Shown here one piece after another: positions 1,082-55,204 of a DNA stretch of 64,000 nt. The stretch is from Oculina patagonica. Its lineage: Eukaryota. The notes under the pieces were generated by a model. It did not search any database and was not told where the DNA came from. It saw only the letters and a program-made list of their open reading frames with translations. The translations under genes were made by a program, and so were the position numbers. The stretch's first letter is position 1. Each line of letters opens with the position of its first letter. The stretch is from NCBI RefSeq assembly GCF_052425735.1, contig NC_135771.1:8308001-8372000 (forward strand), given 5' to 3'.

Positions 1082-3300
1082 CCAGTCTTAACTCCAAGCC
1101 TTCACAGATCAAGAAACTCAGGAAGAGAATTAGTGATTGCAACCAGCCCCTTATCAGTTCTTACCCCCATCTCCTGTACAAAGCTCAAGATCCATTTGGC
1201 GCATGCAGACAGTCGCAGGTCCAAAACAATTTTCTATTTGAAGCAATTTTGATGAAGGACCATGCAGTCTTTGCTTCACAGATCAAGAAACTCACGAAGG
1301 GATTTACTTGGTGGAACCGACTCCTTTGCAGGTCAGTTCTTACACCCATCTCCTGTACAAAGCTCAAGATCTATTCAGCACATGCAGGCAGTCCTAGGTC
1401 AAAAATAGTTTTCTTTCTGAAACAATTTTGATAAAGGACCAGTCTTTGCTTCACAGATCAAGAAACTCAGAAAGAGATTTACTGGGTGGAACCGACTCCT
1501 TTGCAGGCCAGTTCTTACACCCATCTCCTGTACAAAGCTCAAGATCCATTCAGCGCGTGCAGACAGTCCCAGTTCCAAAACAATTTTCTTTCTGTCACAA
1601 TTTTGGTGTAGGACCAGTCTTTGCTTCACAGATCAAGAAACTCAGGAAGAGATTTTCTGGGTGGAACCAGCACCTTATCAGGCCAGTTCCTACAACCTTC
1701 TCTTGTACATAGCTCAGGATCCATTCAGCGCATGCAGACAGTCCCAGGTCCAAAACAATTTATTTCTCGCTGAAACAATTTTGATGAAGGACCAGTCTTT
1801 GCTTCACAGATCAAGAAACCCAGGAAGAGATTTACTGGGTGGAGCCAGCCCCTTATCAGGTCAGTTCTTACACCCATCTCCTGTACAAAGCTCAAGATCT
1901 ATTCAGCACATGCAGGCAGTCCTAGGTCAAAAATAGTTTTCTTTCTGAAACAATTTTGATAAAGGACCAGTCTTTGCTTCACAGATCAAGAAACTTAGGA
2001 AGAGATTTACTGGGTGGAACCAACTCCTTTGCAGGTCAGTTGGTACACCCATCTCCTGTACAAAAGCTCATGATCCATTCAGCGCATGCAGACAGTCCCA
2101 GCTCCAAAACAATTTTCCCTCTAAAACAATTTTTAAGAAGGACCAGTCTATGCTTCACAGATCAAAAAAAAAATCAGGAAGAGATTTACTGGGTGGAACC
2201 AACTCCTTTGCAGGTCAGTTCTTACACCCATCTCCTGTACAGCTCGATCCTTGTGCTGAGAAGCCTCAAAGCTCAAGATCCATTCAGCACATGCAGACAG
2301 TCCCAGGTCCAAAACAAGTTTTAAACTGAAAGAATTTGTATCAAGGACCAGTCTTTGCTTCACAGATCAAGAAACTCAGGAAGAGATGTACTTCAGGGTG
2401 GAACCAGCCCCTTATCAGGCCAGTTCTTACACCCATCTCTTGTACAAAGCTCAAGATCCATTCAGCGCATGCAGACAGTCTCAGGTCCAAAACACTTTTC
2501 AACGTGAAATAATTTTGATGAAGGACCAGTCTTTGCCTCACAAATCAAGAAACTCAGGAAGAGATTTACTGAGTGGAACCAGCCCCTTATCAGGCCGGTT
2601 CTTTACTGGGTGGAACCAACTCGTTTGCAGGTCAGTTCTTACACCCATCTCTTGTACAATGCTTGTTATCCATTCAGTGCATGCAGACAGTCCCACTAGC
2701 TCAAGACACTTTTCAATTTGAAGTAATTTTGACGAAAGACCAGTCTTTGCTTTACAGTTCAAGAAACTCAGGAAGAGATTTACTGGGTGGAACCAGCTCC
2801 CTTGTGGGCCAGGTCTTACACCCATCTCTTGTACAAAGCTCAAGTTCCATTCAGTGTATGCAGACAGTCTCACGTCCAAAACAGTTTTCTCTCTGAAATA
2901 ATTTTGAAGAAGGACCAGTCTTTGCTTCACAGATCAAGAAACTAAGAAAGGGATTTACTGGGTGGAACCAACTCCTTTGCAGGTCAGTTCTTACACCCAT
3001 CTCCTGTACAAAAGCTCAAGATCCATTCAGTGCATGCAGACAGTCCCAAGCTCAAAACACTTTTCAATTTGAAGTACTTTTGAAGAACGACCAGTCTTTG
3101 CTTTACAGTTCAAGAAACTCAGGAAGAGATTTACTGGGTGGAACCAGCTCCCTTGTGGGCCAGTTCTTACACCCATCTCCTGTACAAGCTCAAGATCCAT
3201 CGGCGCGTCCGGCTCAGCACATGCAGACAGTCCCAGGTCCAAAACAAGTTTTAAAATGAAAGAATTTGTAGGTTTTGTGTTTTTTGCTTTACAGATCAAT
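1082..3300. repeat. Tandem satellite, ~175-bp unit, ~12.5 copies
   Basis: The anchor gaccagtctttgcttcacagatcaagaaactc recurs near 1437, 1612, 1790, 1965, 2141, 2346, 2524, 2739, 2914 and 3089. Spacing is 175-178 bp except for two units with insertions. Confidence 0.95.
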
Positions 3301-10377: not shown

Positions 10378-10678
10378 GTAACCCTCGTAGAATTCGCTGA
10401 GATGCCGGGCAGTTTAAATGGAATGCACAACCTTTTTTCGTTGCTATAGTGGTCTCTACAGATCTGGAAACAAGTTAGTTTTCCCCTCAAATCTAAAGTT
10501 TGAGGTAGCATTGAGATTTCGTGGCTTAATGCGATTCTATAGGGAAAACAAAACTAACTTTTGCACTCAGGACGGCTTATTCAGCCTCGAATCTTAAAGA
10601 CCTAAATTTACACAGGTTTCTCAAAATATCACAATCCAACTGGTTTAAGGATGAGTGGCCAAATATTGGTTGTACAGG

Positions 10679-12526
10679 TTATCCAAATGACGTTGATTAG
10701 GACGATGTACTGAATGAAAAAGGCGATGATGGGACCGCTGCAAATGAAAAACCTGAAGAGATCGTTCCAAATGAAGAAGCTTACGAGGTTGTTCCAAATG
10801 AAAGAGGCTTGACTTCTTCCTGGACAAGGCAAAGTTTATCCAGTACTCCTTTGGAGAGCTCTAGTACACAGCCACTGAATGTATCTTTACTTTTTTCAGA
10901 GATCGTTTTCACGGGTATGGTTGTCGCCTGGATCCACTTGTCCTCTGTGGGATCATAGCATTCAACACTCAATTCGCTTTCAATACCGTTCCTTGTGCCA
11001 CCCAGCACATAGAGCTTTTTGTTCAGACATACCATACTGCCATAGACGCGAACAACATTCAAGCTTCCAATAAACTGCCATTCATTTGTAGAAACATTGT
11101 ACATCTCACATGTTGCCGTTACCATTCTCAATTTGTTTGCGTCTCCGGCAACAAAAATCTTTAATTGGGTGGCCACACCAAAAGCACAGCCTCTTTCTTG
11201 TTGCATGTCAGTAATTTCCTCCCATTTGTTTTTAACAGTGTCGAATCGTTCCGCTTTCGTAACGTACTCCGACTCCTCTGGCGGCTTGCCACCAAGAACA
11301 TAAAGATAATTACCAGAGGCAACAACACAAGCCTCTTCTCTACAGCCCTCGTGAGATGACAAAACTGTCTGCCATGAACACAACTCCACATTGTACCTTT
11401 TAATCGTTGATGTGGCGTCTTCAATCTTGACTTCAATGGCATAGATTTCTCCTCTAACGACAGCCACCATGGCAAAATTTGTGGACAAGTCCAAAGTAGC
11501 CCAGCCATTGAAAACGGGATCATATCTCTCTGCCTTACCAATTTAAGGAAAAGTGTACAACTGATCGCAGAATTTTATCATCTGGGTTGTCTGATTTTTC
11601 TCTGACAGCCCGTCTGGCAAACGCTTCCACTCATCTTTCTCTGGGAGATAACAAAAAGTGTATTTCCCTCCACAAGCTACAATGACGCGTGTTTCAATCC
11701 CTTTTCTCGGTGACTGCAGCAGATCGTCGTCTTCACTTGCAAAGGTAGTCAGCTTGATAGCATCTGAGGTCAGCTTCAAACAAGCAAAATTCTCTTGCAC
11801 GAGTTCATTTGTCACGACATAGAGTAAATAGTCACGCGATAGGAAACCCAGCCGAACGTGACGAAATAATTCTTCAAAAAATGCTTTTCGCTCGCTTTTG
11901 TTTTGTTCAACCCACCTTAATATGATTTTAAAAACATCGGCTTCCACTGCAACACAAATCTCATCACTTGAAATCCACCTCTCAACTTCCTTCGCCTCCA
12001 AGTTTAAAAATTCATCCATTTCTGCTACAGAGGCGACGTTTGCGTGGATGAACTTCCTGCTGTTAGCGATAAGTTCGTCACACTGGTATTTCTCAGCAAA
12101 ATAAAAGGTTGAAATGCAGTTTAATTTGGACATCTGTCCTTCAAGAAATCGCCCAGAAATTGTTTTCAATCCCGGAATGAGCAGATAATTCGCTGCGGCT
12201 ATCAGGTCTGCAGCCTGATTCTCCTGAGTGATCTCGACACTTCCTGTGTAGATGAACTCCAAAACATCTTCCATAACAGACCCCGAAATCTCTTCGAACC
12301 GAGCAATTCCTTCTCGATTCTCTTTCATGTCGCTCTGAAGAAGCTTGTGAAAGAACGGGCTTGCTGCGGAGAGCACATTTCTGTGAGCCTTGAACTCTTT
12401 CTCATCTTTCGTCACCAAAGTTACGTCGCATAAATAATCTTGTTTTCGCTGCATGTTGAGCCGCTTTGTCAATTCCACACAAAAAGAAGCTTGTTCTGTA
12501 ACGGAGATAGGCTGTAGATCTTCCAT
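10679..12526 (-). pseudogene. K1: BTB-BACK-Kelch gene with FG-repeat tail, three in-frame stops
   Basis: A 616-codon frame colinear with K8. TAA occurs at 11543-45, 10781-83 and 10697-99 (K8 has CAA at the first and last). One Kelch GG is mutated to GD. The translatable part is a 327-aa BTB-BACK. Confidence 0.9.
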
Positions 12527-12780
12527 GCTCCAAAGAATAGCCGTATTTTCTGAAGATTTAGGTTCTAACCGTCTAGCGTCTTTATATTAGACGGAGAAAA
12601 AGAAGCGAAAGTTCGAGAAGGTATCTCATCACGAGGTCTCCTCGTGATGACGTCATCTCTGGATTAGTTCCCAGTGTCCTCTTCCTCTTCCGCTTTCGAT
12701 TTTGATGATATCTAAGAGGACTCGATAAGACGGTTAAAAAGGAGTCTTTATTTCAAGGTAATAAGGCTATTCTCTGGAGT
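12527..12780. promoter_or_regulatory. Bidirectional promoter/5' region of K1-K2
   Basis: 254 bp between divergent ATGs. Contains a perfect palindrome tcatcacgagg-tct-cctcgtgatga (12626-50), GATGACGTCATC (12646-57) and cttccgctttcgatttt (~12687-703). Confidence 0.7.
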
Positions 12781-14499
12781 ATGGAAGATTTGAAGCCTAT
12801 TTCTGCTGCCGAACAAGCTGCTTTCTGTGTGGAAATGACAAAGCGGCTCAACATGCAGCGAAAACAAGATCATTTATGCGATGTAACTTTGGTGACGAAA
12901 GATGACAAAGAGTTCAAGGCGCATAGAAATGTCCTTTCCGCAGCAAGCCCGTTCTTTCACAAGCTTCTTCAGAGCGACATGAAAGAGAATCGAGAAGGAA
13001 TTGCTCGGTTCGAAGAGATTTCGGGGTCAGTAATGGAAGATGTTTTGGAGTTCATCTACACAGGAAGTGTCGAGATAACTCAAGAGAATTCTGAATATCT
13101 AATCGCTACAGCGAACTATCTGATCATTCCGGGATTGAAAACCGTTTCTGGCCGATTTCTAGAGGGACAAATGACCAAATCAAACTGTATTTCAACCTTT
13201 TATTTCGCTGAGAAATACCAGTGTGACGAGCTTATCGCTAACAGCAGGAAGTTTATCCACGCGAACTTCGCCTCTGTAGCAGAAATGGATGAATTCTTAA
13301 ACTTGGAAGCGAAGGAAGTCGAGAGGTGGATTTCAAATGATGAGATTTCTGTTCCAGACGAGGCAGATGTTTTTAGAATCATATTGAAGTGGGTTGAACA
13401 AGACACGAGCAATCGAAAATCAGTTTTTGAAGAATTGTTTCGTCATGTGCAACTGGTTTTTCTATCGCGTGACTATTTGTTCGATGTCGTGACAAATGAA
13501 CTCGTGCGAGAGAATTCGGTTTGTTTAAAGCTGACCTTAGATGCAATGAAGCTGACTAGCTTTACAAGTGAAAACGAGTTTTCACAATCGCCGAGAAAAG
13601 GGATTGAAACACGCGCCATTGTAGCTTGTGGAGGGAAATACACTTTTTGTTATCTCCCAGAGAAAGATGAGTGGAAGCGTTTGCCAGACGGATTGTTAGA
13701 AAATCGAAGCTGTTATACCCAGATGATAAATTTCCGTGATCAGTTGTACACCTTTCACGGTTGCAAGGCAGAGAGATATGATCCTGTGTTTGATGTTTGG
13801 TCTACTTTGAAGTCAGCACCCAGGGGTGATAACGTGACTGTAGTTAGAGGCGAAATCTATGCTATTGAAGTGGACACGTACAGTAAGAAGAAATCCACTA
13901 TCGCAAGGTACGATGTTGAGCGTTGTTCGTGGCAGACAGTTCTGCAATCTCACGAGGGCTGCAGGCAAGACGCTTGTGTTGTTGCAGCTGGAAATCATCT
14001 GTATGTTCTCGGTGGAACGCCGCCTCAGACAAGGGAATGCGTTGCGAAAGCGGAGAGATTCGACACTGTGGAATACAAATGGGAAGAAATCGTAGACATG
14101 CAACAAGCAAGAGGCGGTGCTTTTGGTGTGGCCACTCAAGGAAAGATTTTTGTTGCCGGAGGAAGGGATAGAGAGAACTGTATGTCGCAAACTTGTGAGA
14201 TGTACAATATCTCATCAAACGAATGGCAGTTTATTGGAAGTTTGAATGTTAGTCGTGTGTGCGGCAGTATGGTGTGTCTGAAGGGAACACTCTATGTGCT
14301 GGGTGGCACAAGGGATAACTGGTCACGAAGTGATTTGAGTGTTGAATGCTATGACCCTACAGAGGACAAATGGATCAAGAAGACAACCATACCAGTGAAA
14401 ACGATCTCGGAAGAAAATAAAGATACATTCACCGGGTGTGCACTGAAACTCTCCAAAGGAGTACTGGACAAAGCTTACGTTGTTAAACTAAACGAATAG
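12781..14499 (+). CDS. K2: Kelch-like BTB-BACK-Kelch protein, 572 aa, intronless
   Basis: BTB signature LCDVTLV..FKAHRNVLSAASPFF..FIYTG, BACK (NCI..AEKY.C..L; WISNDEI), Kelch repeats (YVLGG, ERFD..KW, FVAGG, ECYDP..KW). Confidence 0.95.
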   Translation: MEDLKPISAAEQAAFCVEMTKRLNMQRKQDHLCDVTLVTKDDKEFKAHRNVLSAASPFFHKLLQSDMKENREGIARFEEISGSVMEDVLEFIYTGSVEITQENSEYLIATANYLIIPGLKTVSGRFLEGQMTKSNCISTFYFAEKYQCDELIANSRKFIHANFASVAEMDEFLNLEAKEVERWISNDEISVPDEADVFRIILKWVEQDTSNRKSVFEELFRHVQLVFLSRDYLFDVVTNELVRENSVCLKLTLDAMKLTSFTSENEFSQSPRKGIETRAIVACGGKYTFCYLPEKDEWKRLPDGLLENRSCYTQMINFRDQLYTFHGCKAERYDPVFDVWSTLKSAPRGDNVTVVRGEIYAIEVDTYSKKKSTIARYDVERCSWQTVLQSHEGCRQDACVVAAGNHLYVLGGTPPQTRECVAKAERFDTVEYKWEEIVDMQQARGGAFGVATQGKIFVAGGRDRENCMSQTCEMYNISSNEWQFIGSLNVSRVCGSMVCLKGTLYVLGGTRDNWSRSDLSVECYDPTEDKWIKKTTIPVKTISEENKDTFTGCALKLSKGVLDKAYVVKLNE

Positions 14500-15377
14500 C
14501 CACACAGCTGTCTAGCACCGTTACGTCTGAAAGGTCCACTTATCTTTAAACTGGGGGAGGGGGGCTTAAACTACTTCGATCTACATTGAATTCACGGTCC
14601 CAAGGAAACCTTTTCTGTCTACAGGTTTGATTAATATAAGCCTGTCTGTTAGCTTCAGTTTAGCGCTTGAAAGATAAAGCTGACAGCTCAAGATCTGCCG
14701 TTTACAGTAGAATGAATGAACATATTTACGGCTTTGTTTCCAGTATGTTTTACATAATTCAAATTCACTCAGAATGATTTAAGTTACGTGAAATTATCAT
14801 ACAATTTACAAAGTGAAACACTATTCTCGTTCCCAGAACATCCAGGTCTACTTGTCAGCGACAGGGAGGGTCAAGGGCCCTGGAAACGAGACCGGTTTTT
14901 AAATAGCGATTTCCCCTTATAACAAACCACGAACGCATAGAAGTGAATAATTGTTACAGTACACTGCCAAACCAAACAATGATTGTATGCTTGCGTGACA
15001 AAAAAATAGCAAAATATCGAGGCTATAAAAATCACACAAGTTAGAAAATTAAGTTAGAAGCTAAAATGTCACGTAAGATGTTTAAAATTGCACGCGAAGT
15101 TAACAAAAATCGTGTGAGAAGTTATAAAGTTCTAATATATATAGCGGAGCTGTAATGTTTGTTTTTCATGTAAGACAAACTTACAACAAGCCAGAACTTT
15201 CGTGACTAGCAATTGGTAACTGACAATTTTTACCATTGTATTATTTTTTTTTGTTGGATTTCCGATTGTAGATAAAGTTTAGCTTAGTCATATTTAATAT
15301 TCTAAACTGAAAGATACACCATGTTAAAATAAAGTAATTGGATTTGAAACCAAGCGAATCGTCCAGGAATTCATATA

Positions 15378-15555
15378 CAGTGGAACCTCGATCTAACGAA
15401 GGGCCAAGGGACTGACAAAATATGTTCGCTTTAACGAGCGGGGTTTCGTTGTATCGAGGTTCTTTTCCATATGTTTTACTATTACTGGGGCGAAGAATAT
15501 AGTTGGTTATATCGAGGACTTCGTAAGATAGAGGTTCGTTAGATCGAGGTTCCAC
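15378..15555. mobile_element. TA-target MITE, right end clipped
   Basis: cagtggaacctcgatctaacgaa / ttcgttagatcgaggttccac. The intact copy is at 63033-63211. Confidence 0.8.
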
Positions 15556-15762
15556 CTCGCCCGGGATCACAAAACAAAACCTGCTTAGCAACGTAAAACA
15601 AAATTAACCAGCAAAATCTGCATCGTTCAAAGTGTCTCAAAACGCCGGTGCTTAACCCGGCTCTGTTCACGATGCGATGCGAGTCCATGGCAGGCTTAAC
15701 CCCCAGATTCACAGTGAGTTGTCTCTTGCCCAAGAACACGACACAATGACACCGGCCAGGGC

Positions 15763-16753
15763 TAGGCCTTTCTCGATTATGCTAGTAAAACTGGCATTTA
15801 ATGCTACTAGAAATTCTCGCATAAAGCCAAAAAAATGCTAAAATAATGCCTGATTTCTTTAAAAAATGCCACTTGAATTCCAAAGAATGCTGTGTTTTAT
15901 TTCAAACAAAACGAACGAACTCTTACATTATATGCTCATATCAACAAGGCTACAATAGTACGCGCGCTTTGATTGGCTGCTGAGCGGGCATTATTTTCTT
16001 GTAATGACCGGGCATTATGAAAATTTTCTCGGCTCGACGGTTTTGAGTTGTGACTAAAAGCTACCAGCGAGGGGGCAAAAACAACAAAAAATGCCGACAA
16101 AATATAACTATCTTTTCAATAACTGAAAAAAATATAAGCATACCGATACTTCTTTAGTATGAGCGACGAAGAGAGCCACAGAGAGCAAGAGCGAGTTTTA
16201 CCTCCAGTGTTCTTTCCCTTGATTTTTTTGAATAGTGGTTAAAGGCCATATAATAAATAACTTATTAACCTCGTCCGTTCGGTCATTACAGGAGAATCTC
16301 AGACCTCGACCTTGATGTATTGACCTCGCTGTCGCTCGGTCAATACATCAAGGGCTCGGTCTGAGATTCCTCTGTAATGACCTCACTCTCGGTTAATAAG
16401 TAGTATATATCAACAACAGGTGATACTTAATAATTGTTTGTTTATAAAAATAAGAAATAAAAAAAAATATTAAAATTTTTAAAAAAATTAAAAAAACACA
16501 CACGTAAGTAATACAACACAAGTACACAAGTAACACAACGCACAAACAGTCGAAACAGACAGAAAACAATCAAATTAAGTAATCAAAACTGTGAAACTTT
16601 AGGATAATTTATCCTTCTGAGTTCTGAAATCTGGATCACAGTCACGAAAAATGACAGAAAATGCTAGCAATTCTTTTTCAAGAAAAAACGAAAAAAATGC
16701 TCGTTTTCCCAAAAAATGTCGAAAAAAATGCTAGCATAATCGAGAAAGGCCTA
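15763..16753. mobile_element. hAT-type non-autonomous element inserted in a SINE
   Basis: 23-bp perfect TIR taggcctttctcgattatgctag and 8-bp TSD gccagggc (15755-62, 16754-61). Empty site at ~63471. Confidence 0.9.
15948..16406. mobile_element. Nested element with ~140-bp terminal hairpin
   Basis: Flanked by the direct repeat atatcaacaa (15938-47, 16407-16). A long interrupted inverted repeat spans 16261-16400. There are no TIRs. Confidence 0.6.
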
Positions 16754-18158
16754 GCCAGGGCTCGAATCCAAACCGCTCGATCCGGAGCCTCGTTGCAGTT
16801 CTATCAAAACGGAAATTTTCAAAAGGAACAGATTCTTTCCGTTCCGTCTTCGTGATGGGAAGATTTGAACTGTTCCATTTAAGGAAAAATTCTTACCAAA
16901 AATTCCATGTAAATGAAAAGTGCCACAGGATACTAATCACCTCTCCAGCTTTGGTTGCCCATGGCAACCGTGGGTGGAGAAGGCTGGTCACCCTGCTTTC
17001 AAATTCTTTCCCTCTACACGTTTTTCTTGTTGGTTGATAGAAATTTATTTACAACCTGAGCACTTTCCATTTGTATGGAAAAACCGTTTGTTATGGTTGG
17101 AAATTTAATGGAACGGGCCTTTCCATTGGAAAGTTTTCGGAAAAAAGGAATACCTTCAGAGGTATTCCTCTTTCCCAGTTTCTCCCGGATTGACCGGAAA
17201 TTTACTGTTCCATTTGCTACAACCAGACCGTTCGTTGACAAAGCAAGGTCAGCAATTGACATTTGAACGCTAAAATTTACCCGTTGAATTGATCAAATTT
17301 ATCCAAAAATATTTCTATCGAGTGTAGATAGAGAGCGTTTCTTTTCAAAGAGCTAGTGTTTTTCCCTTGAACTTTTTTCACGGCTACATGAGGAAGGAGG
17401 ATAAGGTAGAAAAGTTTCACCCTCGATCGCCATGCATGGTTTTTTGGACCCAGGCTCATCGCAGTGTTCTCATATAACCATTAAGACCGTTTTACCACTA
17501 TATGTATTTACAAGTCAAAATCAGTTGCATGCGTTCATCAACATAATAAATAAACGGTTATCCGCGAATATTAACGCGAGTTTCAGGTTAGGAGTTTACA
17601 GACGTTCCATACCTTACATTAAAGGGACTGAGTCACAGTAATTTTTAGCCACTATTTTCTATTTTCTTAGAGGAGCTACGTGACGGGTGCTGATTTGTTT
17701 TTTTAATACGGGGATGAGAGAGGTGCAGTTATTTTCCAAGAGACTGGAGCAACAGTCTGTTTATGTCCTCCAGCTGTTCAGACACATTTTGCTTCAAAGG
17801 CCGATAGTCAGTTAGTCACTCTTCATGCTTTTGAAAGTAATGACTGAGTACAGGCGCTGTATACATTATTGCGGGGTGCATTTTATGATGTTACTGAAAT
17901 CGCGAGTGTTTAATTTTCAGACACTTTACCTGAACGGTACTGCTGAAATGGCGCTCACTTGAATGGTCATACACTAGGGTTTCATAAACATAGAACTAGC
18001 TTGTGCAGCATATTAAATAAACACCATTTAAATAGCCACGGTATATTGCAATTCCTGAGTTTTGATTGGTTTACAAGCCGTGTTATATGAGCTCATATCC
18101 CATGGACCGCAAATGTGCTGAGTGTACGCGTTAGTAATTTTCCACTCGCGCTTGTTGG

Positions 18159-18592
18159 CATTCTCGTCCCCAGAGCCGCTAAGTCACGGCCCTCTTAGTC
18201 GATTGAGCCTGGGGCCCGAGGAACAAAGATTTAAATTCTCTTTGTTGAAAATCCAGCCAAGACACATGGAACTCATTACCAGAGATTACAAAATCTTCCA
18301 CATCACAAAATGACTTCATGACAGCTGGCCACTTTTTTCCGGGGGGAGGGGGGGGGGGTGAATAGACGTAGTGAACTTGTATTTTTATATTATTTTAATT
18401 TGTAAGTAGATAACGGAGATAATAATGTTGTTATTATTAAAATTATTTTTTAACATACATTTTTAACATGTTAATTTCACGAAAGATACTGGCTTATTTA
18501 AAAGCTATAGCAACATTCGTGTTTAAATGTCTGTATTTTGTGCCCCAGGCTCAACCAGCTAAGAGGAACAAGCGGCTCTGGGGACGAGAATG
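18159..18592. mobile_element. MITE abutting the K3 promoter
   Basis: 22-bp perfect TIR cattctcgtccccagagccgct with no TSD. The same element lies at 31902-36594 upstream of K5. Confidence 0.8.
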
Positions 18593-18599
18593 GAAACAC

Positions 18600-18724
18600 T
18601 AGTAATGACGTCATCGGTGAATTCGTTCCCTATTGTTTTTTTCCTCTTCCGCTTTCGATTTCGACATCTCAACGAAACGGTTCAAAAGAAGTCATTTCAC
18701 GGAAATAAGGCTATTCTCTGGAGC
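18600..18724 (+). promoter_or_regulatory. K3 5' block: CRE, ETS/IRF-like, GAS-like motifs
   Basis: TGACGTCA at 18606-13; reverse-strand GAAATCGAAAGCGGAA at 18647-62; TTCACGGAA at 18696-704. Confidence 0.55.
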
Positions 18725-20464
18725 ATGGAAGATCTACAGCCTATATCTGCTGCCGAGCAAGCTGCTTTCTGTGTTGAATTGACGAAGCGGCTCAACATGG
18801 AGCGAAAACAAGATCATTTATGCGACATAACTTTGGTGACGAAAGATGACAAAGAGTTCAAGGCTCATAGAAATGTGCTTTCCGCAGCAAGCCCGTTCTT
18901 TCACAAGCTTCTTCAGAGCGACATGAAAGAGAATCGAGAAGGAATTGCTCGGTTCGAAGAGATTTCGGGGTCTGTAATGGAAGATGTTTTGGAGTTCATC
19001 TACACAGGAAGTGTCGAGATCACTCAAGAGAACTCTAAAGATCTTATCGCTACAGGGAACTATCTTCTCATCCCGGGCTTGAAAACAGTTTCTGGGCGAT
19101 TTCTAGAAGGACAGATGACCAAATCAAATTGCATTTCAACCTTTTATTTCGCTGAGAAATACCAGTGTGACGAACTCATCGCTAACAGCAGGAAGTTCAT
19201 CCACGCGAACTTCGCCTCTCAGGTAGCAGAAATGGATGAATTCTTAAACTTGGAAGCAAAGGAAGTCGAGAGGTGGATTTCGGACGACGAGATTTCAGTT
19301 CCAGACGAAATAGATGTTTTTAGAATCATATTAAAGTGGGTTAAACATGATAAGAGCAATCGGAAAGCAGCTTTTGAAGAATTGTTTCGTCACGTGCAAC
19401 TGGTTTTCCTATCGCGTGACTATTTGTTCGATGTCGTGACAAATGAACTCGTGCAAGAGAATTCTCGTTGTTTGCGGCTGACCTCAGATGCAATGAAACT
19501 GACCAGCTTTAAAAATGAAAATGATTTTTCACAATCGCCGAGAAAAGGGATTGAAACACGCGCCATTGTAGCTTGTGGAGGGAAATACACTTTTTGTTAT
19601 CTCCCAGAGAAAGATGAGTGGAAGCGTTTGCCAGACGGATTGTTAGAAAATCGAAGCTGTTATACCCAGATGATAAATTTCCGTGATCAGTTGTACACCT
19701 TTCACTATTGTAAGGCAGAGAGATACGATCCCGTTTTTTATAGCTGGTCTACTTTGAATTCACTGACAGTGTCCAGGGGCTCTGCCATAGTGACTGTAGT
19801 TAGTGGTGAGATCTATGCTATGGAGGTGGACACGTTTCGTACGAAGAAATCCACCATCGCAAGGTATGATGTTGAGCGGTGTTCATGGCAGACAGTTCTG
19901 TCATCTCACGAGGGCTGCAGAGAAGAGGCTTTTGTTGTTGCAGCTGGTAATCACCTTTATGTTTTTGGGGGAAAGCCTCCACAGACACGGGAATACGTTG
20001 CTAAAGTTGAGAGATTCGACACTGTGGAAAACAAATGGGAGAATATCGCAGACATGCAACAAGCAAGAGGCTGTGCTTTTGGTGTGGCCACTCAAGGAAA
20101 GATTTATGTTGCAGGGGGGAAACAGGACGAGGAATATTACGCATCGTGGTTAACAGCATGTGAGATGTACAATATTTCAACCAACGAATGGCAGTCTATT
20201 GCAAGCTTGAATGTTAATCGTGAACATGGCAGTATGGTGTGTCTGAAAGGAACACTTTATGTGCTGGGTGGCGCATGTGACTTTCCTTCACGAAATGATT
20301 TGAGTGTTGAATGCTATGACGCTACAGAGGACAAATGGATCAAGAAGACAACCATACCAGTGAAAACGATCTCCGAAGAAAATAAAGATACATTCACCGG
20401 GTGTGCACTGAAACTCTCCAAAGGAGTACTGGACAAAGCGCGCGTTGTTAAACTAAAAGAATAG
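18725..20464 (+). CDS. K3: Kelch-like BTB-BACK-Kelch protein, 579 aa
   Basis: Intact ORF. Start placed at the MEDLQP codon shared by the paralogs, because the upstream ATG at 18590 lies in a MITE TIR. Confidence 0.93.
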   Translation: MEDLQPISAAEQAAFCVELTKRLNMERKQDHLCDITLVTKDDKEFKAHRNVLSAASPFFHKLLQSDMKENREGIARFEEISGSVMEDVLEFIYTGSVEITQENSKDLIATGNYLLIPGLKTVSGRFLEGQMTKSNCISTFYFAEKYQCDELIANSRKFIHANFASQVAEMDEFLNLEAKEVERWISDDEISVPDEIDVFRIILKWVKHDKSNRKAAFEELFRHVQLVFLSRDYLFDVVTNELVQENSRCLRLTSDAMKLTSFKNENDFSQSPRKGIETRAIVACGGKYTFCYLPEKDEWKRLPDGLLENRSCYTQMINFRDQLYTFHYCKAERYDPVFYSWSTLNSLTVSRGSAIVTVVSGEIYAMEVDTFRTKKSTIARYDVERCSWQTVLSSHEGCREEAFVVAAGNHLYVFGGKPPQTREYVAKVERFDTVENKWENIADMQQARGCAFGVATQGKIYVAGGKQDEEYYASWLTACEMYNISTNEWQSIASLNVNREHGSMVCLKGTLYVLGGACDFPSRNDLSVECYDATEDKWIKKTTIPVKTISEENKDTFTGCALKLSKGVLDKARVVKLKE

Positions 20465-22668: not shown

Positions 22669-24366
22669 ATGGAAGATCTGCAGCCTATCACTGCTGCCGA
22701 ACAAGCTTCATTCTGTGTGGAATTGACAAAGCGGCTCAACATGCAGCGAAAACAAGATCATTTATGCGACATAACTTTGGTGACGAAAGATGACAAAGAG
22801 TTCAAGGCTCATAGAAATGTGCTTTCCGCAGCAAGCCCGTTCTTTCACAAGCTTCTTCAGAGTGACATGAAAGAGAATCGTGAAGGAATCGCTCGGTTCG
22901 AAGAGATTTCGGGGTCTGTAATGGAAGATGTTTTGGAGTTCATTTACACAGGAAGTGTCGAGATAACTCAAGAGAATTCTGAAGATCTAATCGCTACAGC
23001 GAACTATCTGATCATTCCGGGCTTGAAAACCGTTTCTGGCCGATTTCTAGAAGGACAAATGACCAAATCAAACTGCATTTCAACCTTTTATTTCGCTGAG
23101 AAATACCAGTGTGACAAACTTATCGCTAACAGCAAGAAGTTCATCCACGCGAACTTCGCCTCTGTAGCAGAAATGGATGAATTCTTAAACTTGGAAGCAA
23201 AGGAAGTTGAGAGATGGATTTCAAGCGATGAGATTTCTGTTGCAGTCGAAGCCGATGTTTTGAAAATCATTTTCAAGTGGATCGAACAAAACAAAAGCGA
23301 GCGAAAGGCAACGTTTGAAGAATTGTTTCGTCACGTGCGGCTGGTTTTCCTGTCGCGTGACTATTTGCTCGATGTCGTGACAAATGAACTTGTGCGAGAG
23401 AATTTCGGTTGTTTGAAGCTGGTTTCAGATGCTATTAAGCTGACTAGCTTTACAAGTGAAAATGATCTTCGGCAGTCACCGAGAAAAGGGCTTGAAACAC
23501 GCGCCATTGTAGCTTGTGGAGGGAAATACACTTTCTGTTATCTCCCCGAGAAAGATGAGTGGAAGCGTTTGCCAGACGGGCTGTCAGAGAATCGGGACTA
23601 TGAAACCAAGATGATAAACTTCCACGATAAGTTGTACACCTTTCACCGTTATAAGGCAGAGAGATGCGATCCCGTATTTAATGGCTGGTCTACTTTGGAC
23701 TTAAGTTTGTCCGCCCCTTCTACTATGGTGACTGTCGTTAAAGGAGAAATCTATGCTGTTGAGGTCAACACATCAACGAATAAATCCACTATTCAAAGGT
23801 ACAATGTAGAGTTGTGTTCATGGCAGACAGTTCTCTCATCTCACGAGGGCTGCAGAGAAGAGGCTTGAGTTGTTGCAGCTGGTAATCACCTTTATATTCT
23901 CGGAGGCAAGCGGCCACAGGCAGGATACGTTACGAAAAGTGAGAGATTCGACACTGTGGAAAACAAATGGGAGGAAATCGCAGACATGCAAAAAGAAAAA
24001 AGCTACACTTTTGGTGTGGCCACTCAAGGAAACATTTTTGTTGCCGGTGGGTGGTCGAGAACATGTGAGATGTACAATATTTTAAAAAACGAATGGCACT
24101 CTATTGCAAGCTTGAATGTTAAGCATGTATGGGGTAGTATGGTGTGTCTGAAGGGAACACTCTATGCCCTGGGTGGTGTAAGGAATGTCACCTATTTCCC
24201 AAGTGAGTTAACTGTTGAATGCTACGACTCTACAAAGGACAAGTGGATCAAGAAAACAACCATACCAGTGAAAATGATTTCCAAAGAAAGTAATAATACA
24301 TTTACTGGCTGCGTACTGAAACTCTCCAAAGGAGTACTGGACAAACTTGACGTTGTTAAAGAATAG
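22669..24366 (+). pseudogene. K4: BTB-BACK-Kelch gene with a single in-frame TGA
   Basis: 566-codon frame with TGA at 23866-68 where most paralogs have TGT (Cys). The frame continues unbroken to the normal stop. CRE at 22542-49. Confidence 0.85.
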
Positions 24367-25205: not shown

Positions 25206-28200
25206 CCTTATTAACTGCGCTGCGCAGTTCTTGCTCTGCACGTCCTTTTTTTTTTTAACTGCGCTGCGCAGTTCTTGCTCTGCACGTCCTTTTTTTTTTT
25301 TTTTTTTTTTTTTTCTCAGTGACCAGACTGATGCCCCCGCTCGGCCAGGCTGGGGTCACGCAAGGTTTAAAAGCTAGAAAACACTTACTAATGGGAAATT
25401 TTCAAATGCTTTGGTCTTAATAAGCATGTTTAGCGTGAGGTGTCCGATTTTGAAGCATTTTATTCAAACAAAATTCTAAATTTTCATGCCTCGAAAGAAA
25501 AATATATTTCAGCGGGCCAAAATCTGTGAATAAATACCATTACGTTGGTGTTAAAGAATGTGCTGACATGACAAGTTTCACTTTCGATCGGCTAGACCTC
25601 GAGTCACGTAATTTTTCAAAGCTATTTTCAGCTACCTTTCAAATCTTTGCGAATCCATTAATCTTTACTTAAAAAATTCAGTGTGAAGTATTTTGAAGCA
25701 TTTGAATCGAAGAAAATACTAAACTTTTACGCTTTAAATAAATACGCTTTAGCGGGCAAGAATTTACATTTATTTACATTACGTTTGTGTCTTTACTTAG
25801 CATGTTTAATGTAAAATGTTCGATTTTTAAGTGTTTGACTCAACGAAAATACTAAATTTTCATGCTATGAAAGAAAAATATATTTTAGCGGACTTGATAC
25901 TGTGCCTAAATACCATTACGTTCGTGTCAAAGAATGTGCTGACATGACAAGTTTCACTTTTACAAGGCCTTACTTGTGATCGGCCAGTCACGCAATGTTT
26001 TAAAGCTGTTATTCAGCTACTTATGTAAAATTTATGAATCCTTTGGTCTTCATTTAGCACGTTTAGTGTGAAATATTCAATTTTAAAGCGAAATGTATTT
26101 TTCTTTCTTCACTCTGCTAAAAACGGCTCAAGTGTTCTTCTCAAATTTGATTTAAATCTTTGCTTTAATATTCCCTTCTAGGAACGATTGTTCAGTGTTT
26201 AAACATTAATTCAATACAACACTGGATGGATTAAAATAAATCGTCTGGCTTCACGGATCAGGATCGTGGGAATCTGGCTAGCATTAGCATACAAGAAAAA
26301 TAATAAATTGCAGATGGAACTAGTCAACCATGAAATGTCACACAAGGTGTTCTCTTACCATCTGTTTGTCAGTCGCAACATTTTTTGAAAGAGAAATATA
26401 ATTCAGCGGGCCAGAATCTGTAATGAAATACCATTACGTTGGTGGCAAAGAATGTGCTGACATGACAAGTTTCACTTTCGATCGGCTAGATCTTGAGTCA
26501 CGTAATGTTTCAAAGCTGTTACCAGCTACCTTTTAAATCTTTGCGAATCCTTTGGTCTTTACTAAACAAATTAATTGCGAAGTATTTCTCTTTTAAGGGT
26601 AATCTTTTTTTTTTGCCTGTGTCATTGAAAGGATTTTAAAGATATCAAGAAAAATTCCCTTCACAAACATGCCCTGACTGCCGCCCTGACTTGTACCGCT
26701 TACGTCATTCGGTATGCTAGGGAATTACCCTCTGTGCTAGAAACAGCTTGGGAATTCGGCCAGAATTTGCCTATACTGTCGAAATTCTCACGGATACTTT
26801 CGCTTTAGTGAGCAAGAATTTACATTTATTTACATTACGTCTGTGTCCCGGAATGTGCTGACGTTAGCAAATTTCTACTTTCACAAGGCACCGATCGGCA
26901 AGAATCACGCAATGCTCTGAAAGGTTTAAATCTGCCAGAAACGGAAACTAAACAAATCCTTTGGTCTAAACTTAGCATGTTAAGTGTGAAATATTCGACT
27001 TTTTAGCGTTATTTATTTTTGGAGCTGTGTCATCTATAGGATTTCTGAAATCTGATGGAAAACCACCGAGACAAACATGCCTTGACTTGCAAAGATTACG
27101 TCATTGCTAAATTAATTCTCCGGGAAATTCCCATTCAGCAAAACACAGGTCTAGTGTTTTTCTCAAATTTGATTTAATTATTTGCTCCAATATTCCATTT
27201 TCGGAGCTGGTTATTCAATCTTTAAACGGTAATTCAAGACAACACTGGTCGCTGATTTAAAAGATTTTTTTGTTTCACGGATCAGGATCGTGGGAATTAA
27301 ATTTGGCCAGCATTAGCATATAAAAAAATATTTAATTTCGGACGGAACTAGTCAACCATGAAATGTCACGCAAGGTGTTTTCCTACCATCTTGTTTGCCA
27401 GTCGCAACATTGTTCGACGCAGGTAAAGGGGATAAGGGGGGGGGGGGGGTGCAATTTTTTGTTCCCCCCACATGGCTCCCCTAAAGTGCTCACGAGACCA
27501 GCGCAGTTGTAAGCTCTAAGAGCTCTTGTTTTTTTCTCAGTGACCAGACTGATGCCCCCGCTCGGCCAGGCTGGGGTCACGCAAGGTTTAAAAGCTAGAA
27601 AACACTTACTAATGGGAAATTTTCAAATGCTTTGGTCTTAATAAGCATGTTTAGCGTGAGATGTCCGATTTTGAAGCGTTTTATTCAAACAAAATTCTAA
27701 ATTTTCATGCGTCGAAAGAAAAATATATTTCAGCGGGCCAGAATCTGTGAATAAATACCATTACGTTGGTGTTAAAGAATGTGCTGACATGACAAGTTTC
27801 ACTTTCGATCGGCTAGACCTCGAGTCACGTAATTTTTCAAAGCTATTATCAGCAGCTACCTTTCAAATCTTTGCGAAGCCATTAATCTTTACTTACAAAA
27901 TTCAGTGTGAAGTATTTTGAAGCGTTTGAATCAAAGAAAATACTAAAATTTCACGCTTTAAAAAAAATACGCTTTAGCGGGCAAGAATTTACATTTATTT
28001 ACATTACGTTTGTGTCCTGGAATGTGCTGGCGTTAGCAAATTTTTACTTTCACAAGGCACTGATCGGCAAGAATCACGCAATGCTCTGAAAGGTTTAAAT
28101 CTACTTCAAAAAAAAAAACTAAACAAATCCTCTGGTCTTAACTTAGCATGTTAAGTGTGAAATGTTCGACTTTTTAGCGTTATTTATTTTTGGAGCTGTG

Positions 28201-30093
28201 TCATCTAGAAGATTTCTGAAATCTGATGGAAAACCACTGAGACAAACATGCCCTGACTTGCAAGGGTTACGTCATTGGTAAATTAATTCCCCGGGGAATT
28301 CCCATTCAGCAAAACACAGGTCTAGTGTTCTTCTCAAATTTGATTTAATTATTTGCTCCAATATTCCATTTTCGGAGCTGGTTATTAACTGCGCTGCGCA
28401 GTTCTTGCTCTGCACGGGGTTTATTATTATTTTTCGTTTTGTCGGTGACTTGTACCAAGCCTCCACTCGGTCAAGCTCATGTCACGCGATGTTTAGAAGC
28501 TACAAATCAGTAACAAATGGAGACATTTTCTTATTTTTTTTCCTTTAAAAAGAATGTTTAGTGTGAAATATTCGATTTTGAAGCGTTTTATTTAAAGGAA
28601 ATTCTAAATTTTCATGCGTCGAAAGAAAAATATATTTCAGCGGGCCAGAATCTGTGAATAAATACCATTACGTTGGTGTAAAAGAATGTTCTGACATGAC
28701 AAGTTTCACTTTCGATCGGCTAGACTTTGAGTCACGTAATTTTTCAAAGCTATTATCAGCTACCTTTCAAATCTTTGCGAATCCATTAATCTTTACTTAC
28801 AAAATTAAGTGTGAAGTATTTTGAAGCGTTTGAATCGAAGAAAATACTAAAATTTCATGCTTTAAATAAATACGCTTTAGCGGGCAAGAATTTACATTTA
28901 TTTACATTACGTTTGTGTCCTGGAATGTGCTGGCGTTAACATTTTTTACTTTCACAAGACACTGATCGGCAAGAATCACGCAATGCTCTGGAAGGTTTAA
29001 ATCTGCTACAAACGGAAACTAAACAAATCCTCTGGTCTAAACTTATATGTTAAGTGTGAAATATTCGACTTTTTAGCGTTATTTATTTTTGGAGCTGTGT
29101 CATCTATGGGATTTCTGAAATCTGATGAAAAACCACTGAGACAAACATGCCCTGACTTGCAAGGGTTACGTCATTAGTAAATTAATTCCCCGGGGAATTC
29201 CCATTCAGCAAAACACAGGTCTAGTGTTCTTCTCAAATTTGATTTAATTATTTGCTCCAATATTCCATTTTCGGAGCTGGTTATTCAATCTTTAAACGGT
29301 AATTCAAGACAACACTGGATGCTGATTTAAAAGATTTTTTTGTTTCACGGATCAGGATCGTGGGAATTAAATTTGGCCATCATTTGCATTAGCAGATAAG
29401 AAAAATGTTTAATTTCGGATGGAACTAGTCAACCATGAAATGTAACGCAAGGTGTTTTCCTACCATCTTGTTTGTCAGTCGCAACATTGTTCGACGCAGG
29501 TAAAGGGGATAAGGGGAGGGGGTGCATTTTTTGTTCCCCCCAGATGGCTTCCCTAAAGTGCTCACGAGACCAGCGCAGTTGTAAGCTCTAAGAGCTCTTG
29601 TTCAATCTTTAAACGGTAATTCAATGCAACACTGGATACTGATTTAAAAGATTTTTTTGTTTCACGGATCAGGATCCTGGGAATTAAATTTGGCCACCAT
29701 TAGCATATGAGAAAAATATTTAATTTCGGATGGAACTAGGCAACCATGAAATGTCACGCAAGGTGTTTTCTTACCATCTTGTTTGTCAGTCGCAACATTG
29801 TTCGACGCAGGTAAAGGGGATAGGGGGGGGGGGGTGCATTTTTTGTTCCCCCCACATGGCTCCCCTAAAGTGCTCACGAGACCAGCGCAGTTGTAAGCTC
29901 TAAGAGCTCTTGTTATAGGAATATAATGAAGCATTTTAACAACGCGAACAAAATTTACGCGTAATAAAATTATCGCGAATTTAAGAAAAGTTCTGGTTGG
30001 ATGCTTATAGTAAACGTGTTTGCATAAATAAAATTAACGCGTATTTTTGAAATTCGCCTTAATAACATGTATCGTTAATTTCCTATAATAAGG
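25206..30093. mobile_element. TA-target MITE split by the Helentron-type array
   Basis: The rejoined left end ccttat|tataggaa is the inverse of ttcctataataagg ending at 30093. A related fragment lies at ~45890-46015. Confidence 0.7.
25212..29913 (+). mobile_element. Non-autonomous Helentron-type (HINE/DINE-1-like) element with two self-nested copies (25256-27529, 28386-29601)
   Basis: Each copy starts with the palindromic taactgcgctgcgcagtt and ends with the subterminal IR cagcgcagtt, the hairpin agctctaagagct and cttgt. Insertions fall between T and T without a TSD. Internal tandem subrepeats are present. Confidence 0.8.
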
Positions 30094-36701: not shown

Positions 36702-38411
36702 ATGGAAGATCTACAGCCTATCTCTGCTGCCGAACAAGCTGCTTTCTGTGTGGAATTGACGAAGCGGCTCAACATGCAGCGAAAACAAGATCATTTATGC
36801 GACGTAACTTTGGTGACGAAAGATGACAAAGAGTTCAAGGCTCACAGAAATGTGCTTTCCGCAGCAAGCCCGTTCTTTCACAAGCTTCTTCAGAGCGACA
36901 TGAAAGAGAATCGAGAAGGAATTGCTCGGTTCGAAGAGATTTCGGGGTCTGTAATGGAAGATGTTTTGGAGTTCATCTACACAGGAAGTGTCGAGATCAC
37001 TCAAGAGAATTCTGAAGATCTAATTGCTACAGCGAACTACCTTCTCATCCCGGGCTTGAAAACCGTTTCTGGGCGATTCCTAGAAGGACAGATGACCACA
37101 TCAAACTGCATTTCAACCTTTTTTTTCGCTGAGAAATACCAGTGTGACGAACTTATCGCTAACAGCACGAAGTTTATCCACGCGAACTTCGCCTCTGTAG
37201 CAGAAATGGATGAATTCTTGAACTTGGAGGCGAAGGAAGTCGAGAGGTGGATTTCAAATGACGAGATTTCTGTTGCATTCGAAGAAGATGTTTTTCAAAT
37301 CATATTAAAGTGGGTTGAACAAAACAAGAGCGCGCGAAAAGCAACGTTTGAAGAATTATTTCGTCACGTTCGGCTGGTTTTCCTATCGCGTGACTATTTG
37401 CTTAATGTCGTGACGAATGAACTCGTGCGTGAGAATTTTGGGTGTTTTAGGTTGACCTCAGATGCTATAAAACTGACTACTTTTGCAAGTGAAGATGATG
37501 ATCTGCTGCAGTCACCGAGAAAAGGGCTTGAAACACGCGCCATTGTAGTTTGTGGTGGGAAATACACTTTCTGTTATCTCCCGGAGAAAGATGAGTGGAA
37601 GCGTTTGCCAGACGGGCTGTCAGTGAAAAACCAGAAAACCCAGATGGTAAAATTCCGCGATCAGTTGTACACCTTCCCTCAATATAGTAAGGCAGAGAGA
37701 TACGATCCCGTTTTTAATGGTTGGTCTACTTTGGACCTGTACACTAGTTCTGCTGTGACTGTCGTTAAAGGAGAAATCTATGCCATTGGCGTCGACATAT
37801 CAGCGAAAAAGACCACTATCAAAAGATACAATACGTCGTCGTGTTCATGGCAGACAGTTCTCTCATCTCACGAGGGCTGTAGGCAAGACTCTTGTGTTGT
37901 TGCGGCTGGTAATCATCTGTATGTTGTCGGTGGCAAGCCGCCACAGACACAGGAACACGTTAAGAAAGCAGAGAGATTCGACACTGTGGAAAACAAATGG
38001 GAAGAAATCGCAGACATGCAACGAGAGAGAGGCGGTGCTTTTGGTGTGGCCACTCAAGGAAAGATTTTTGTTGCCGGAGGAAGAGACAGAGAGAACCGTA
38101 TGTCGGACATTTGTGAGATGCACAATATTTCAACAAACGGATGGCAGTCTATTGCAAGTTTGAATGTTAGTCGTGTGTGCGGCAGTATAGTGTGTCTGAA
38201 GGGAACCCTCTATGTGCTGGGTGGCACTTACTATATACAAAGTGACTTGAGTGTTGAATGCTATAACCCTACAGAGGACAAATGGACCCAGAAGACAACC
38301 ATACCAGTGAAAATGATCTCTGAAGAAAATAAAGATACATTCACCGGATGTGTCCTGAAACTCTCCAAAGGAGTACTGGACAAAGCTTATGTTGTGAAAC
38401 TAAAAGAATAG
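36702..38411 (+). CDS. K5: Kelch-like BTB-BACK-Kelch protein, 569 aa
   Basis: Intact ORF with the same domain signatures as K2. Confidence 0.95.
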   Translation: MEDLQPISAAEQAAFCVELTKRLNMQRKQDHLCDVTLVTKDDKEFKAHRNVLSAASPFFHKLLQSDMKENREGIARFEEISGSVMEDVLEFIYTGSVEITQENSEDLIATANYLLIPGLKTVSGRFLEGQMTTSNCISTFFFAEKYQCDELIANSTKFIHANFASVAEMDEFLNLEAKEVERWISNDEISVAFEEDVFQIILKWVEQNKSARKATFEELFRHVRLVFLSRDYLLNVVTNELVRENFGCFRLTSDAIKLTTFASEDDDLLQSPRKGLETRAIVVCGGKYTFCYLPEKDEWKRLPDGLSVKNQKTQMVKFRDQLYTFPQYSKAERYDPVFNGWSTLDLYTSSAVTVVKGEIYAIGVDISAKKTTIKRYNTSSCSWQTVLSSHEGCRQDSCVVAAGNHLYVVGGKPPQTQEHVKKAERFDTVENKWEEIADMQRERGGAFGVATQGKIFVAGGRDRENRMSDICEMHNISTNGWQSIASLNVSRVCGSIVCLKGTLYVLGGTYYIQSDLSVECYNPTEDKWTQKTTIPVKMISEENKDTFTGCVLKLSKGVLDKAYVVKLKE

Positions 38412-39730: not shown

Positions 39731-39902
39731 CGAAATGATTTGAGTGTTGAATGCTATGACCCTACAGAGGACAAATGGATCAAGAAGACAACCGCATACC
39801 AGTGAAAATGATCTCCGAAAAAGGTGAGGATTCATTCACCGGGTTTGCACTGAAACTCTCCAAAGGAGTACTGGACAAAGCGTTGTTAAACTAAAAGAAT
39901 AG
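39731..39902 (+). pseudogene. K6: 3' relic of a Kelch-like gene
   Basis: Only RNDLSVECYDPTEDKW..KLSKGVLDK..KLKE* remains, with small frameshifting indels. The 3' flank matches that of K9. Confidence 0.9.
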
Positions 39903-50900: not shown

Positions 50901-51229
50901 GGTACAGTTCTATAACTGCAGTGTAACCCGCGTGGAATTCGCTGAGATGACGAGCAGTTTAAATGGAATGCACAACCTTTCTTCGTTTCTATAGTGGTCT
51001 CTACAGATCTGGAAACAAGTTAGTTTTGTCCCCTCAGATCTAAAGTTTGAGGGAGCATCGAGATTGTTTGTGGCTTAATGCGATTCTAGGGAAAACAAAA
51101 CTAACTTTTACACCCAGGACGGCTTATTCAGCCTCGAATCTTAACTGAAGACCTAAATTTACACAGGTTTCTCAAAATATCACAATCCAACTGGTTTAAG
51201 AATAAGTGGCCAAATATTGGCTGTACAGG

Positions 51230-53080: not shown

Positions 53081-53335
53081 GCTCCAAAGAATAGCCGTAT
53101 TTTCTGAAAATTTAGGTTCTAACCGTCTAGCGTCTTTATATTAGACGGAGAAAAAGAAGCGAAAGTTCGAGAAGAGAAGGTATCTCATCAGGAGGTCTCC
53201 TCGTGATGACGTCATCTCTGGATTAGTTCCCAGTGTCCTCTTCTTCTTCCGCTTTCGATTTTGATGATATCTAAGCGAGACGGTTCAAAAGGAGTCTTTA
53301 TTTTAAGGTAATAAGGCTATTCGATTCTCTGGAGT
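53081..53335. promoter_or_regulatory. Bidirectional promoter/5' region of K8-K9
   Basis: Near-identical to 12527-12780. TGACGTCA at 53207-14; the palindrome has one mismatch. Confidence 0.7.
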
Positions 53336-55051: not shown

Positions 55052-55204
55052 TCCCTCAACTGTTTTGCACTGTTGTGTTTGAAAGCTCCACTTACCCTTA
55101 AACTCGGGGTGGGAGGGAGGGGAATCACCTGGATCTGGAAAAAATAATAGCAGATTGTGAGGAAAACGAAACCTGATCGATCCCAAGGGAAACAGTTATC
55201 CCTT

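Follow-up and report, generated by a model that had tools for sequence, protein, structure and literature searches.

Gene conversion among tandem paralogs is textbook knowledge, as is partial concerted evolution in which the recognition domain of a gene family escapes homogenisation. In MHC, KIR and plant NLR clusters, as in the RHD/RHCE and opsin gene pairs, the process leaves tracts of excess identity with divergent flanks, and trees that are incongruent along the gene; part of the gene becomes uniform within a species, the recognition part keeps old lineages, and pseudogenes join the exchange. All of these features recur in the locus described here, a tandem array of intronless BTB-BACK-Kelch genes in the stony coral Oculina patagonica (NCBI RefSeq assembly GCF_052425735.1, contig NC_135771.1, positions 8,308,001 to 8,372,000; this whole analysed stretch of 64,000 nt, with 0 N and a GC content of ~40%, is called the window, and positions below are those of the window). 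The window holds ten copies or fragments of one gene, K1 to K10, and the whole array, which extends past the window, is a tandem series of about 16 BTB-BACK-Kelch genes and pseudogenes, each of a single exon. The locus differs from these families in its protein architecture and its host, a scleractinian coral, and in a ratio of nonsynonymous to synonymous substitution (omega) that is below 1 in the recognition part. The Kelch halves of these genes are mosaics, and we attribute the mosaics, with a probability of about 0.85, to heritable gene conversion or non-allelic homologous recombination (NAHR) among the tandem paralogs.

The closest protein relatives are the KLHL/KEAP1 adaptors, with which the coral genes have in common the three-domain architecture, significant Pfam and PDB matches and, in a structural model, a predicted six-bladed propeller that starts with strand B. 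They differ from those adaptors in being intronless, lineage-specific and arranged in tandem, with many relatives of at least 70% identity in protein databases; their CUL3 binding and substrates are predicted from architecture alone. A second comparison is offered by the MATH-BTB and F-box adaptor families that have expanded in nematodes and plants, for which site-specific positive selection was reportedly the key result of work by Thomas in Genome Research in 2006. Like the coral array, those families are large, lineage-specific sets of cullin adaptors with a conserved docking module, a fast-evolving substrate module and many pseudogenes; unlike them, the coral genes have a Kelch propeller as substrate module rather than a MATH or F-box-associated domain, and an omega below 1. 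Among corals, a telomere-to-telomere study of Acropora ‘non-syntenic regions’ described tandem expansions driven by NAHR, with copy number changing via unequal crossing-over (PMC12314368); NAHR shapes coral tandem arrays in both cases, although gene conversion, Kelch and BTB are unmentioned there. In a major comparison of coral genomes, Noel et al. (2023; PMC10236652) judged gene conversion between tandem duplicates to be ‘very rare’. Neither literature searches nor the coral genome papers that were checked yielded an account of Kelch or BTB arrays in corals. What is new here is an N-terminal half that appears to evolve in concert beside a Kelch half with types that predate a species split and with patchy exchange; the process itself would be ordinary gene conversion.

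The tract common to K2 and K3

The first-pass annotation of this DNA, made from the sequence alone, claimed that K2 and K3 are identical over 180 bp, and the nucleotide comparison bears this out exactly:

13579–13758, plus strand: K2 side of the identical tract, an exact match to K3
19526–19705, plus strand: K3 side of the identical tract, an exact match to K2

The tract contains 0 mismatches and has a mismatch directly at either end, and its flanking 120-nt windows differ at 14–19 positions (~12–16%). It includes 63 consecutive polymorphic sites in the 8-copy alignment and 78 in the 13-copy alignment, with an analytic p of 2e-7, a Bonferroni-corrected p of 1.7e-5 (78 pairs) and a permutation p at the floor. 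In terms of the protein, it extends from the end of the linker through blade-1 strands B to D and the hypervariable first D-A loop to the next strands A and B.

Read evidence was taken from Logan unitigs of ~60–250 nt, built on a k=31 graph and too short for the K2-to-K3 interval. In run X1, unitigs at ~17–28x cover most of K2 from 13356 to 14245 without mismatch, and two of them (13488–13608 and 13729–13976; ~17–25x) enter the tract by exactly 30 nt from K2-specific flanks, which is how a k=31 graph behaves at a true two-copy repeat. Another run, filed under a different organism label, also covers the two tract ends in K2, with one mismatch at each. Three samples, each with its own organism label and one of them a coral metagenome, have runs that contain the K2 mosaic, and no alternative joints were seen in four runs, in which contigs drop rare variants.

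Changing relatives along the Kelch half

The copies within the window are listed by position:

10784–12526, minus strand: K1, a type-C pseudogene with a premature TAA at codon 328 (11543–11545), head-to-head with K2
12781–14499, plus strand: K2, intact (572 aa), the most mosaic copy, with Pfam BTB, BACK and Kelch matches
18725–20464, plus strand: K3, intact (579 aa); the mechanical open reading frame begins at 18590, the conserved start is at 18725
22669–24366, plus strand: K4, a pseudogene with a single premature TGA at codon 400 (23866–23868)
36702–38411, plus strand: K5, an intact 569-aa chimera, type B and then type A
39731–39888, plus strand: K6, a type-A 3'-end fragment with 92% identity to K9
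44023–45723, plus strand: K7, intact (566 aa), type B
51230–53080, minus strand: K8, intact (616 aa), type C with an additional C-terminal tail, head-to-head with K9
53336–55051, plus strand: K9, intact (571 aa), type A
58187–61832, plus strand: K10, a fragmented pseudogene in pieces 58187–58671, 60668–61015 and 61578–61832, with codons 33–255 deleted and two insertions

Further copies lie beyond the window at G000:C14:8374678-8399244, where K11 and K13 are frameshifted, K12, K14 and K16 are open, and one more fragment is present. About half of the copies in the array are broken.

A sliding scan of the codon alignment at the nucleotide level confirmed that nearest relatives change along the gene. 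K2 is nearest to K3 over most of 13254–14028 (aa ~260–400), to K5 over 14029–14264 (aa ~424–504; 9–12 mismatches per 120 nt) and to K9/K3 over 14265–14493; the later switch to K5, which had been read from protein motifs, is also recovered by maximum likelihood (ML), where the tree of that segment joins K2 and K5 at 94%. K5 itself, said to match K7 in mid-gene, is indeed nearest to K7 and its clade over aa ~320–400 and K2-like thereafter: it is of type B (with K7, K11, K14 and K16) to ~aa 400, and of type A, K2-like, from 37947 to its end. The matches claimed for the K10 pseudogene also hold, since piece K10b is nearest to K4 at 87.7% (next best 82%), and piece K10c is nearest to K3 (87.5% overall, 98.8% over 81 nt); taken in order, the pieces of K10 are nearest to K4, then K13/K3, then K14/K2/K3. 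Other internal patches with divergent flanks link K8 with K16 (at 52114–52178 in K8; Bonferroni p 9.7e-3) and K13 with K14 (Bonferroni p 8e-3), and a near-exact K5–K16 tract at 37709–37796 was borderline in the tract test. The pseudogenes K10 and K13 have tracts in common with intact copies.

One of the proposed switches fails. The C-terminus of K7 was thought to match K1/K8, but at the nucleotide level K7 is 81.4% identical to K8 and 78.1% to K1 versus 84.4% to K2; it is nearest to its own clade (K14 and K16, outside the window), and within the window closer to K2, K3 and K9 than to K1/K8. The residues that the K7 C-terminus shares with K1/K8 are therefore probably ancestral.

Tests against a single history of the gene gave concordant results. 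The pairwise homoplasy index (PHI) lies far below its permuted values (z=-12.8; with 2000 permutations, p is at the floor), also when third codon positions are taken alone (z=-7.4). For the eight full copies, parsimony was evaluated on each of the 10,395 possible unrooted trees (257 informative sites), with segmentation by dynamic programming: the best single tree requires 521 steps, and four breakpoints (alignment nt 103, 477, 1270 and 1515) reduce this to 471. One to five breakpoints save 20, 33, 42, 50 and 58 steps, where the maxima of site-order permutations are 8 to 23 (z=11–21), and for four breakpoints the 50 steps saved compare with ≤20 in such permutations. Simulations without recombination (n=40, up to four breakpoints), run on the single ML tree with the estimated rate of each site held in its observed position, saved at most 13 steps; as the observed savings exceed this, clustered rate variation is not the cause.

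The ML trees of the individual segments differ in the same sense. Segment B gives ((K2,K3)100,K9)100 together with (K5,K7)100, the tree of segment C has (K2,K5)94 and that of segment D has (K2,(K3,K9)) with K5, whereas K1 is the sister of K8 in all segment trees. In approximately unbiased (AU) tests, the trees of all other segments are rejected by each of the segments B, C and D (p 1e-59 to 0.011); segment A rejects only the whole-gene tree and that of B, and is compatible with the trees of C and D. PHI, parsimony, AU tests and simulations thus agree that one tree does not fit all segments.

The first-pass annotation had also proposed that the stretches SHEGCR, ERFDTVENKW and FGVATQG, which lie between the loops, serve as recombination anchors. 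These stretches are conserved as protein but are not invariant at the DNA level, and the only invariant DNA run of at least 14 nt in the Kelch half is at alignment nt 896–912. Local identity at tract ends is 0.798 versus a background of 0.825 (P=0.86; 14 ends, Kelch-region background), a comparison that is biased in that tracts end at a mismatch. A role of conserved stretches as anchors is not supported.

Two halves with different histories

The N-terminal and Kelch halves contrast in divergence: pooled synonymous divergence (dS) among the eight copies is ~0.10–0.15 in the BTB core (aa 16–105) versus ~0.4–0.5 over most of the Kelch half. For a comparison across species, we used a head-to-head gene pair, XC and XA, from another coral assembly (ENA ERZ25067872, L031). 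In the Kelch tree, K1, K8 and XC form a clade (support 100/100) and XA falls with the K2/K3/K9 type, with a grouping of XC and XA rejected (AU 1.35e-5). In the BACK tree (aa 106–265), XC and XA form a clade (98/97), and a grouping by orthology can be rejected (AU 0.013). Protein-level trees of the N-terminal half across species are too weak to decide (AU 0.28–0.45). BTB dS is 0.05–0.24 within Oculina versus 0.22–0.42 between species, and the Kelch dS of the orthologs K8 and XC is 0.29. As the synonymous rate of BTB is normal between species and low within, the N-terminal half would be evolving in concert, and the Kelch types appear to predate the species split and to have been patchily exchanged since. 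GC content at third codon positions is 0.51 in the BTB core versus 0.44 in the Kelch half, which would fit GC-biased conversion, though weakly and only as a suggestion.

In run X1, summed unitig depth is ~560–660 over the BTB core of K2 (12813–13025) versus ~25–40 over Kelch parts specific to K2; such a depth should not be read as a number of copies, and the high BTB value is in line with many copies having the same 31-mers in a homogenised BTB. The array of the other coral also contains a gene for an RVT_1 reverse transcriptase (L031:19841-21388) beside its Kelch genes and a truncated copy with BTB and BACK only (15807–16658).

Every product of the array's genes examined here carries BTB, BACK and Kelch domains, the layout of a KLHL protein. 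In K2, BTB/POZ (PF00651, E=5e-29) spans residues 23–128 and BACK (PF07707, E=3e-26) residues 136–237; the Kelch half has Kelch_1 and Kelch_6 matches, and the best solved relatives are KEAP1, KLHL3 and KLHL11 (the name ‘kelch-like protein 24’ is an automatic annotation label). Based on this BTB-BACK-Kelch architecture, we regard the genes as probable Cullin-3 substrate adaptors. An AlphaFold2 model of K2 has 24 strands in six groups of four, i.e., a six-bladed propeller, with a predicted local distance difference test score of ~80–95 over most of residues 280–520 and low confidence in the BTB part; the first strand in the sequence would be strand B, as in KEAP1.

When placed on this model, all hypervariable and indel-rich segments are predicted to map to the B-C and D-A loops, which are the loops that form the substrate pocket of KEAP1 (PMC12314335). 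Omega, estimated by the Nei-Gojobori method and pooled by structural class, is 0.23 in strands, 0.65 in B-C loops (confidence interval 0.41–1.01; 17/48 columns gapped) and 0.47 in D-A loops, so that constraint is looser on the likely binding face; no structural class has an omega above 1, which would have indicated positive selection on the loops. The earlier proposal of combinatorial binding surfaces is thus borne out as regards the position of the variable segments in substrate-face loops, but a selected or designed outcome is unsupported, with omega below 1. Site models would be a poor guide in such a family, as recombination inflates their false positives. An old, shared library of loop cassettes was considered and rejected, as the loop motifs of the window hardly occur among the 112 best homologs from outside the chromosome; the loop variants are specific to this species, and loop sharing reflects recent exchange or ancestry within the lineage.

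Array layout and the origin of the mosaics

All copies are genes in their own right, whole or decayed, and each has a separate start and stop and a conserved upstream stretch of ~90–140 bp; homology between copies ceases at that distance before the ATG and some tens of bp beyond the stop, and the rest of the intergenic DNA is 70–80% alike or unalignable. Three pairs are head-to-head (K1/K2, K8/K9 and K12/K13). The spacers of the first two (12527–12780 and 53081–53335) measure 254–255 bp and that of K12/K13, outside the window, 265 bp; they are probably bidirectional promoters. The K1/K2 unit (10378–14564) is a segmental duplicate of the K8/K9 unit (50923–55116), with 89.5% identity over 4.2 kb. 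Since K1 always groups with K8 but K2 leaves K9 over much of its length, the type-A member of the K1/K2 pair appears to have been partly overwritten.

Several other features accompany the array. Type-C copies differ from the remaining types at the C-terminus, where K8 (51230–51375, minus strand) has ~45 additional residues rich in S, F, G and P, and K1 a shorter extension. K10 is split by insertions at 58672–60667 (~2.0 kb) and 61016–61577 (~0.56 kb), and its deletion of codons 33–255 is at 58282. A satellite-like tandem repeat at 1100–3270 has a period of ~175 bp (also read as 353 or 389), ~12 copies and 76–85% matches; larger direct repeats that do not code for Kelch, in units of ~0.9 kb at 87–96% identity, lie between K4 and K5 (25252–29914). 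Elsewhere in the genome, a dispersed family member with 83–88% identity to K2 (G000:C12:25404476-25411634) is interrupted near codon 161 by other sequence of ~5.4 kb, and more distant BTB-Kelch clusters on other contigs have a DNA identity of ~66–70%.

We propose that the array grew by duplication of units of ~6–8 kb, including a head-to-head gene pair, and that sequence was later exchanged between copies by NAHR in the heritable cell lineage. The recent events would be short, non-crossover gene-conversion patches of ~65–180 bp, of which the K2/K3 tract is the best example; older events would be longer replacements or unequal crossovers, giving rise to chimeras such as K5, with its 5' part of type B and its 3' part of type A. 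The BTB-BACK half would have been exchanged often enough to become near uniform within the species, and the Kelch half patchily, such that distinct types were kept and the loops of the top face became mosaic. The mosaicism, the tracts and the different histories of the two halves are demonstrated by the sequences themselves; beyond this, we infer the repair mechanism and the direction of each event, as well as the reason for the escape of the Kelch half from homogenisation, which could be divergence limiting heteroduplex formation, selection against the loss of loop diversity, or both.

Several points weigh against this account. No exchange event has been caught happening, and for most events neither donor and acceptor nor age can be fixed. 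For the K2/K3 tract, no third relative of the loop type was found in the genome, and donor and acceptor cannot be named because no third copy has that loop type. Where a chimera has one junction only, as K5 does, unequal crossover is indistinguishable from gene conversion. The tree of BTB only weakly favours the grouping by species (81/82), and AU leaves orthology unrejected (p=0.47); for this reason we base the claim of concerted evolution on BACK and on BTB dS. Finally, the read support consists of short unitigs on the K2 side only, and the best run may come from the sample of the assembly itself.

It could be asked whether the mosaics exist in the genome at all, as tandem copies that are 83–92% identical assemble poorly and 180 bp of identity could allow a switch between paralog or haplotype reads. 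Chimeric joins of this kind are nonetheless very unlikely, given that the 180-bp patch requires two switches, that unitigs at single-copy depth link each K2 flank to the tract, and that the array sits on a 25.6-Mb contig; moreover, the older mosaic segments are only ~90% identical to the nearest copy, and thus cannot have been assembled from the reads of that copy. If the sequence is accepted, the appearance of exchange might still be produced by parallel amino-acid substitutions, or by rate variation so clustered that it distorts the trees. In loops that are short, variable and perhaps under selection, some motifs could be convergent, and the likeness of K7 to K1/K8 does seem to consist of shared ancestral residues. 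However, the signal is not convergence, because it is present at third codon positions (see the PHI test above) and the 180-bp tract is identical at all sites, every synonymous one included, and the rate-preserving single-tree simulations fall far short of the observed saving (≤13 vs 50 steps), so that a history free of exchange is scarcely credible. Hardly more plausible is a programmed, somatic shuffling of loop segments, as in lamprey VLR or chicken immunoglobulin genes, where variable segments (of a repeat protein, as here) are likewise copied between neighbouring homologs, pseudogenes among them. The resemblance is a general one, of many similar copies and pseudogene fragments close together. 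Those systems are somatic and programmed, and combine one incomplete expressed gene with promoterless donor cassettes, whereas the coral copies are full or decayed genes, each with its own start, stop and upstream stretch, and the mosaics are inherited: the same K2 mosaic recurs in the runs of three samples, no alternative joints are reported, and part of the mosaic segments are ~9–12% diverged from the nearest copy and therefore old and inherited.

Heritable exchange by gene conversion or NAHR therefore remains our preferred explanation, and the further readings concern what might be layered upon it. Selection may have favoured new combinations of substrate loops, which would amount to a recognition repertoire, e.g., against microbes, viruses or symbionts; similar repertoires have been proposed for plant NLR clusters and for nematode MATH-BTB or F-box families. 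The placement of all hypervariable segments in loops corresponding to the KEAP1 pocket, the graded omega (0.65 in B-C and 0.47 in D-A loops vs 0.23 in strands), the homogenised scaffold half beside Kelch types that persist across species, and the tracts that K10 and K13 have in common with intact copies are all consistent with this. Yet no loop class exceeds an omega of 1, and the interval for B-C loops fits relaxed constraint equally well; with about half of its copies broken, the array looks as neutral birth and death would leave it; the loop variants are not old cassettes common to several species; and the adaptive reading draws on sequence and a model, not on expression or substrates. On this balance we consider selected diversification possible but rather doubtful. 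Less probable again is that conversion is itself maintained as a diversifier, such that intact and broken copies together form a reservoir for the top-face loops of Cullin-3 adaptors and the CUL3-docking half is kept interchangeable, giving a fast-evolving intracellular repertoire for the recognition of microbes, viruses or symbionts. Some of the conversions in long-lived colonies could then be mitotic and yet inherited, which is conceivable because corals, to our knowledge, have no early segregated germline.

With heritable exchange among the paralogs as the preferred reading, the array is a clear-cut example, backed by statistical controls, of interlocus gene conversion in a coral and of concerted evolution that differs between domains, in contrast to the ‘very rare’ gene conversion reported for coral tandem duplicates (PMC10236652). 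The interest is chiefly for coral genomics and for selection scans on these families: in the expanded Kelch families of corals, trees, orthology calls and scans for positive selection will be misleading as long as recombination is left out of the model. For the family itself, the sequences suggest a set of adaptors with a uniform ligase-docking half and a diverging, likely substrate-binding face, which is the pattern that would be expected of a recognition repertoire.

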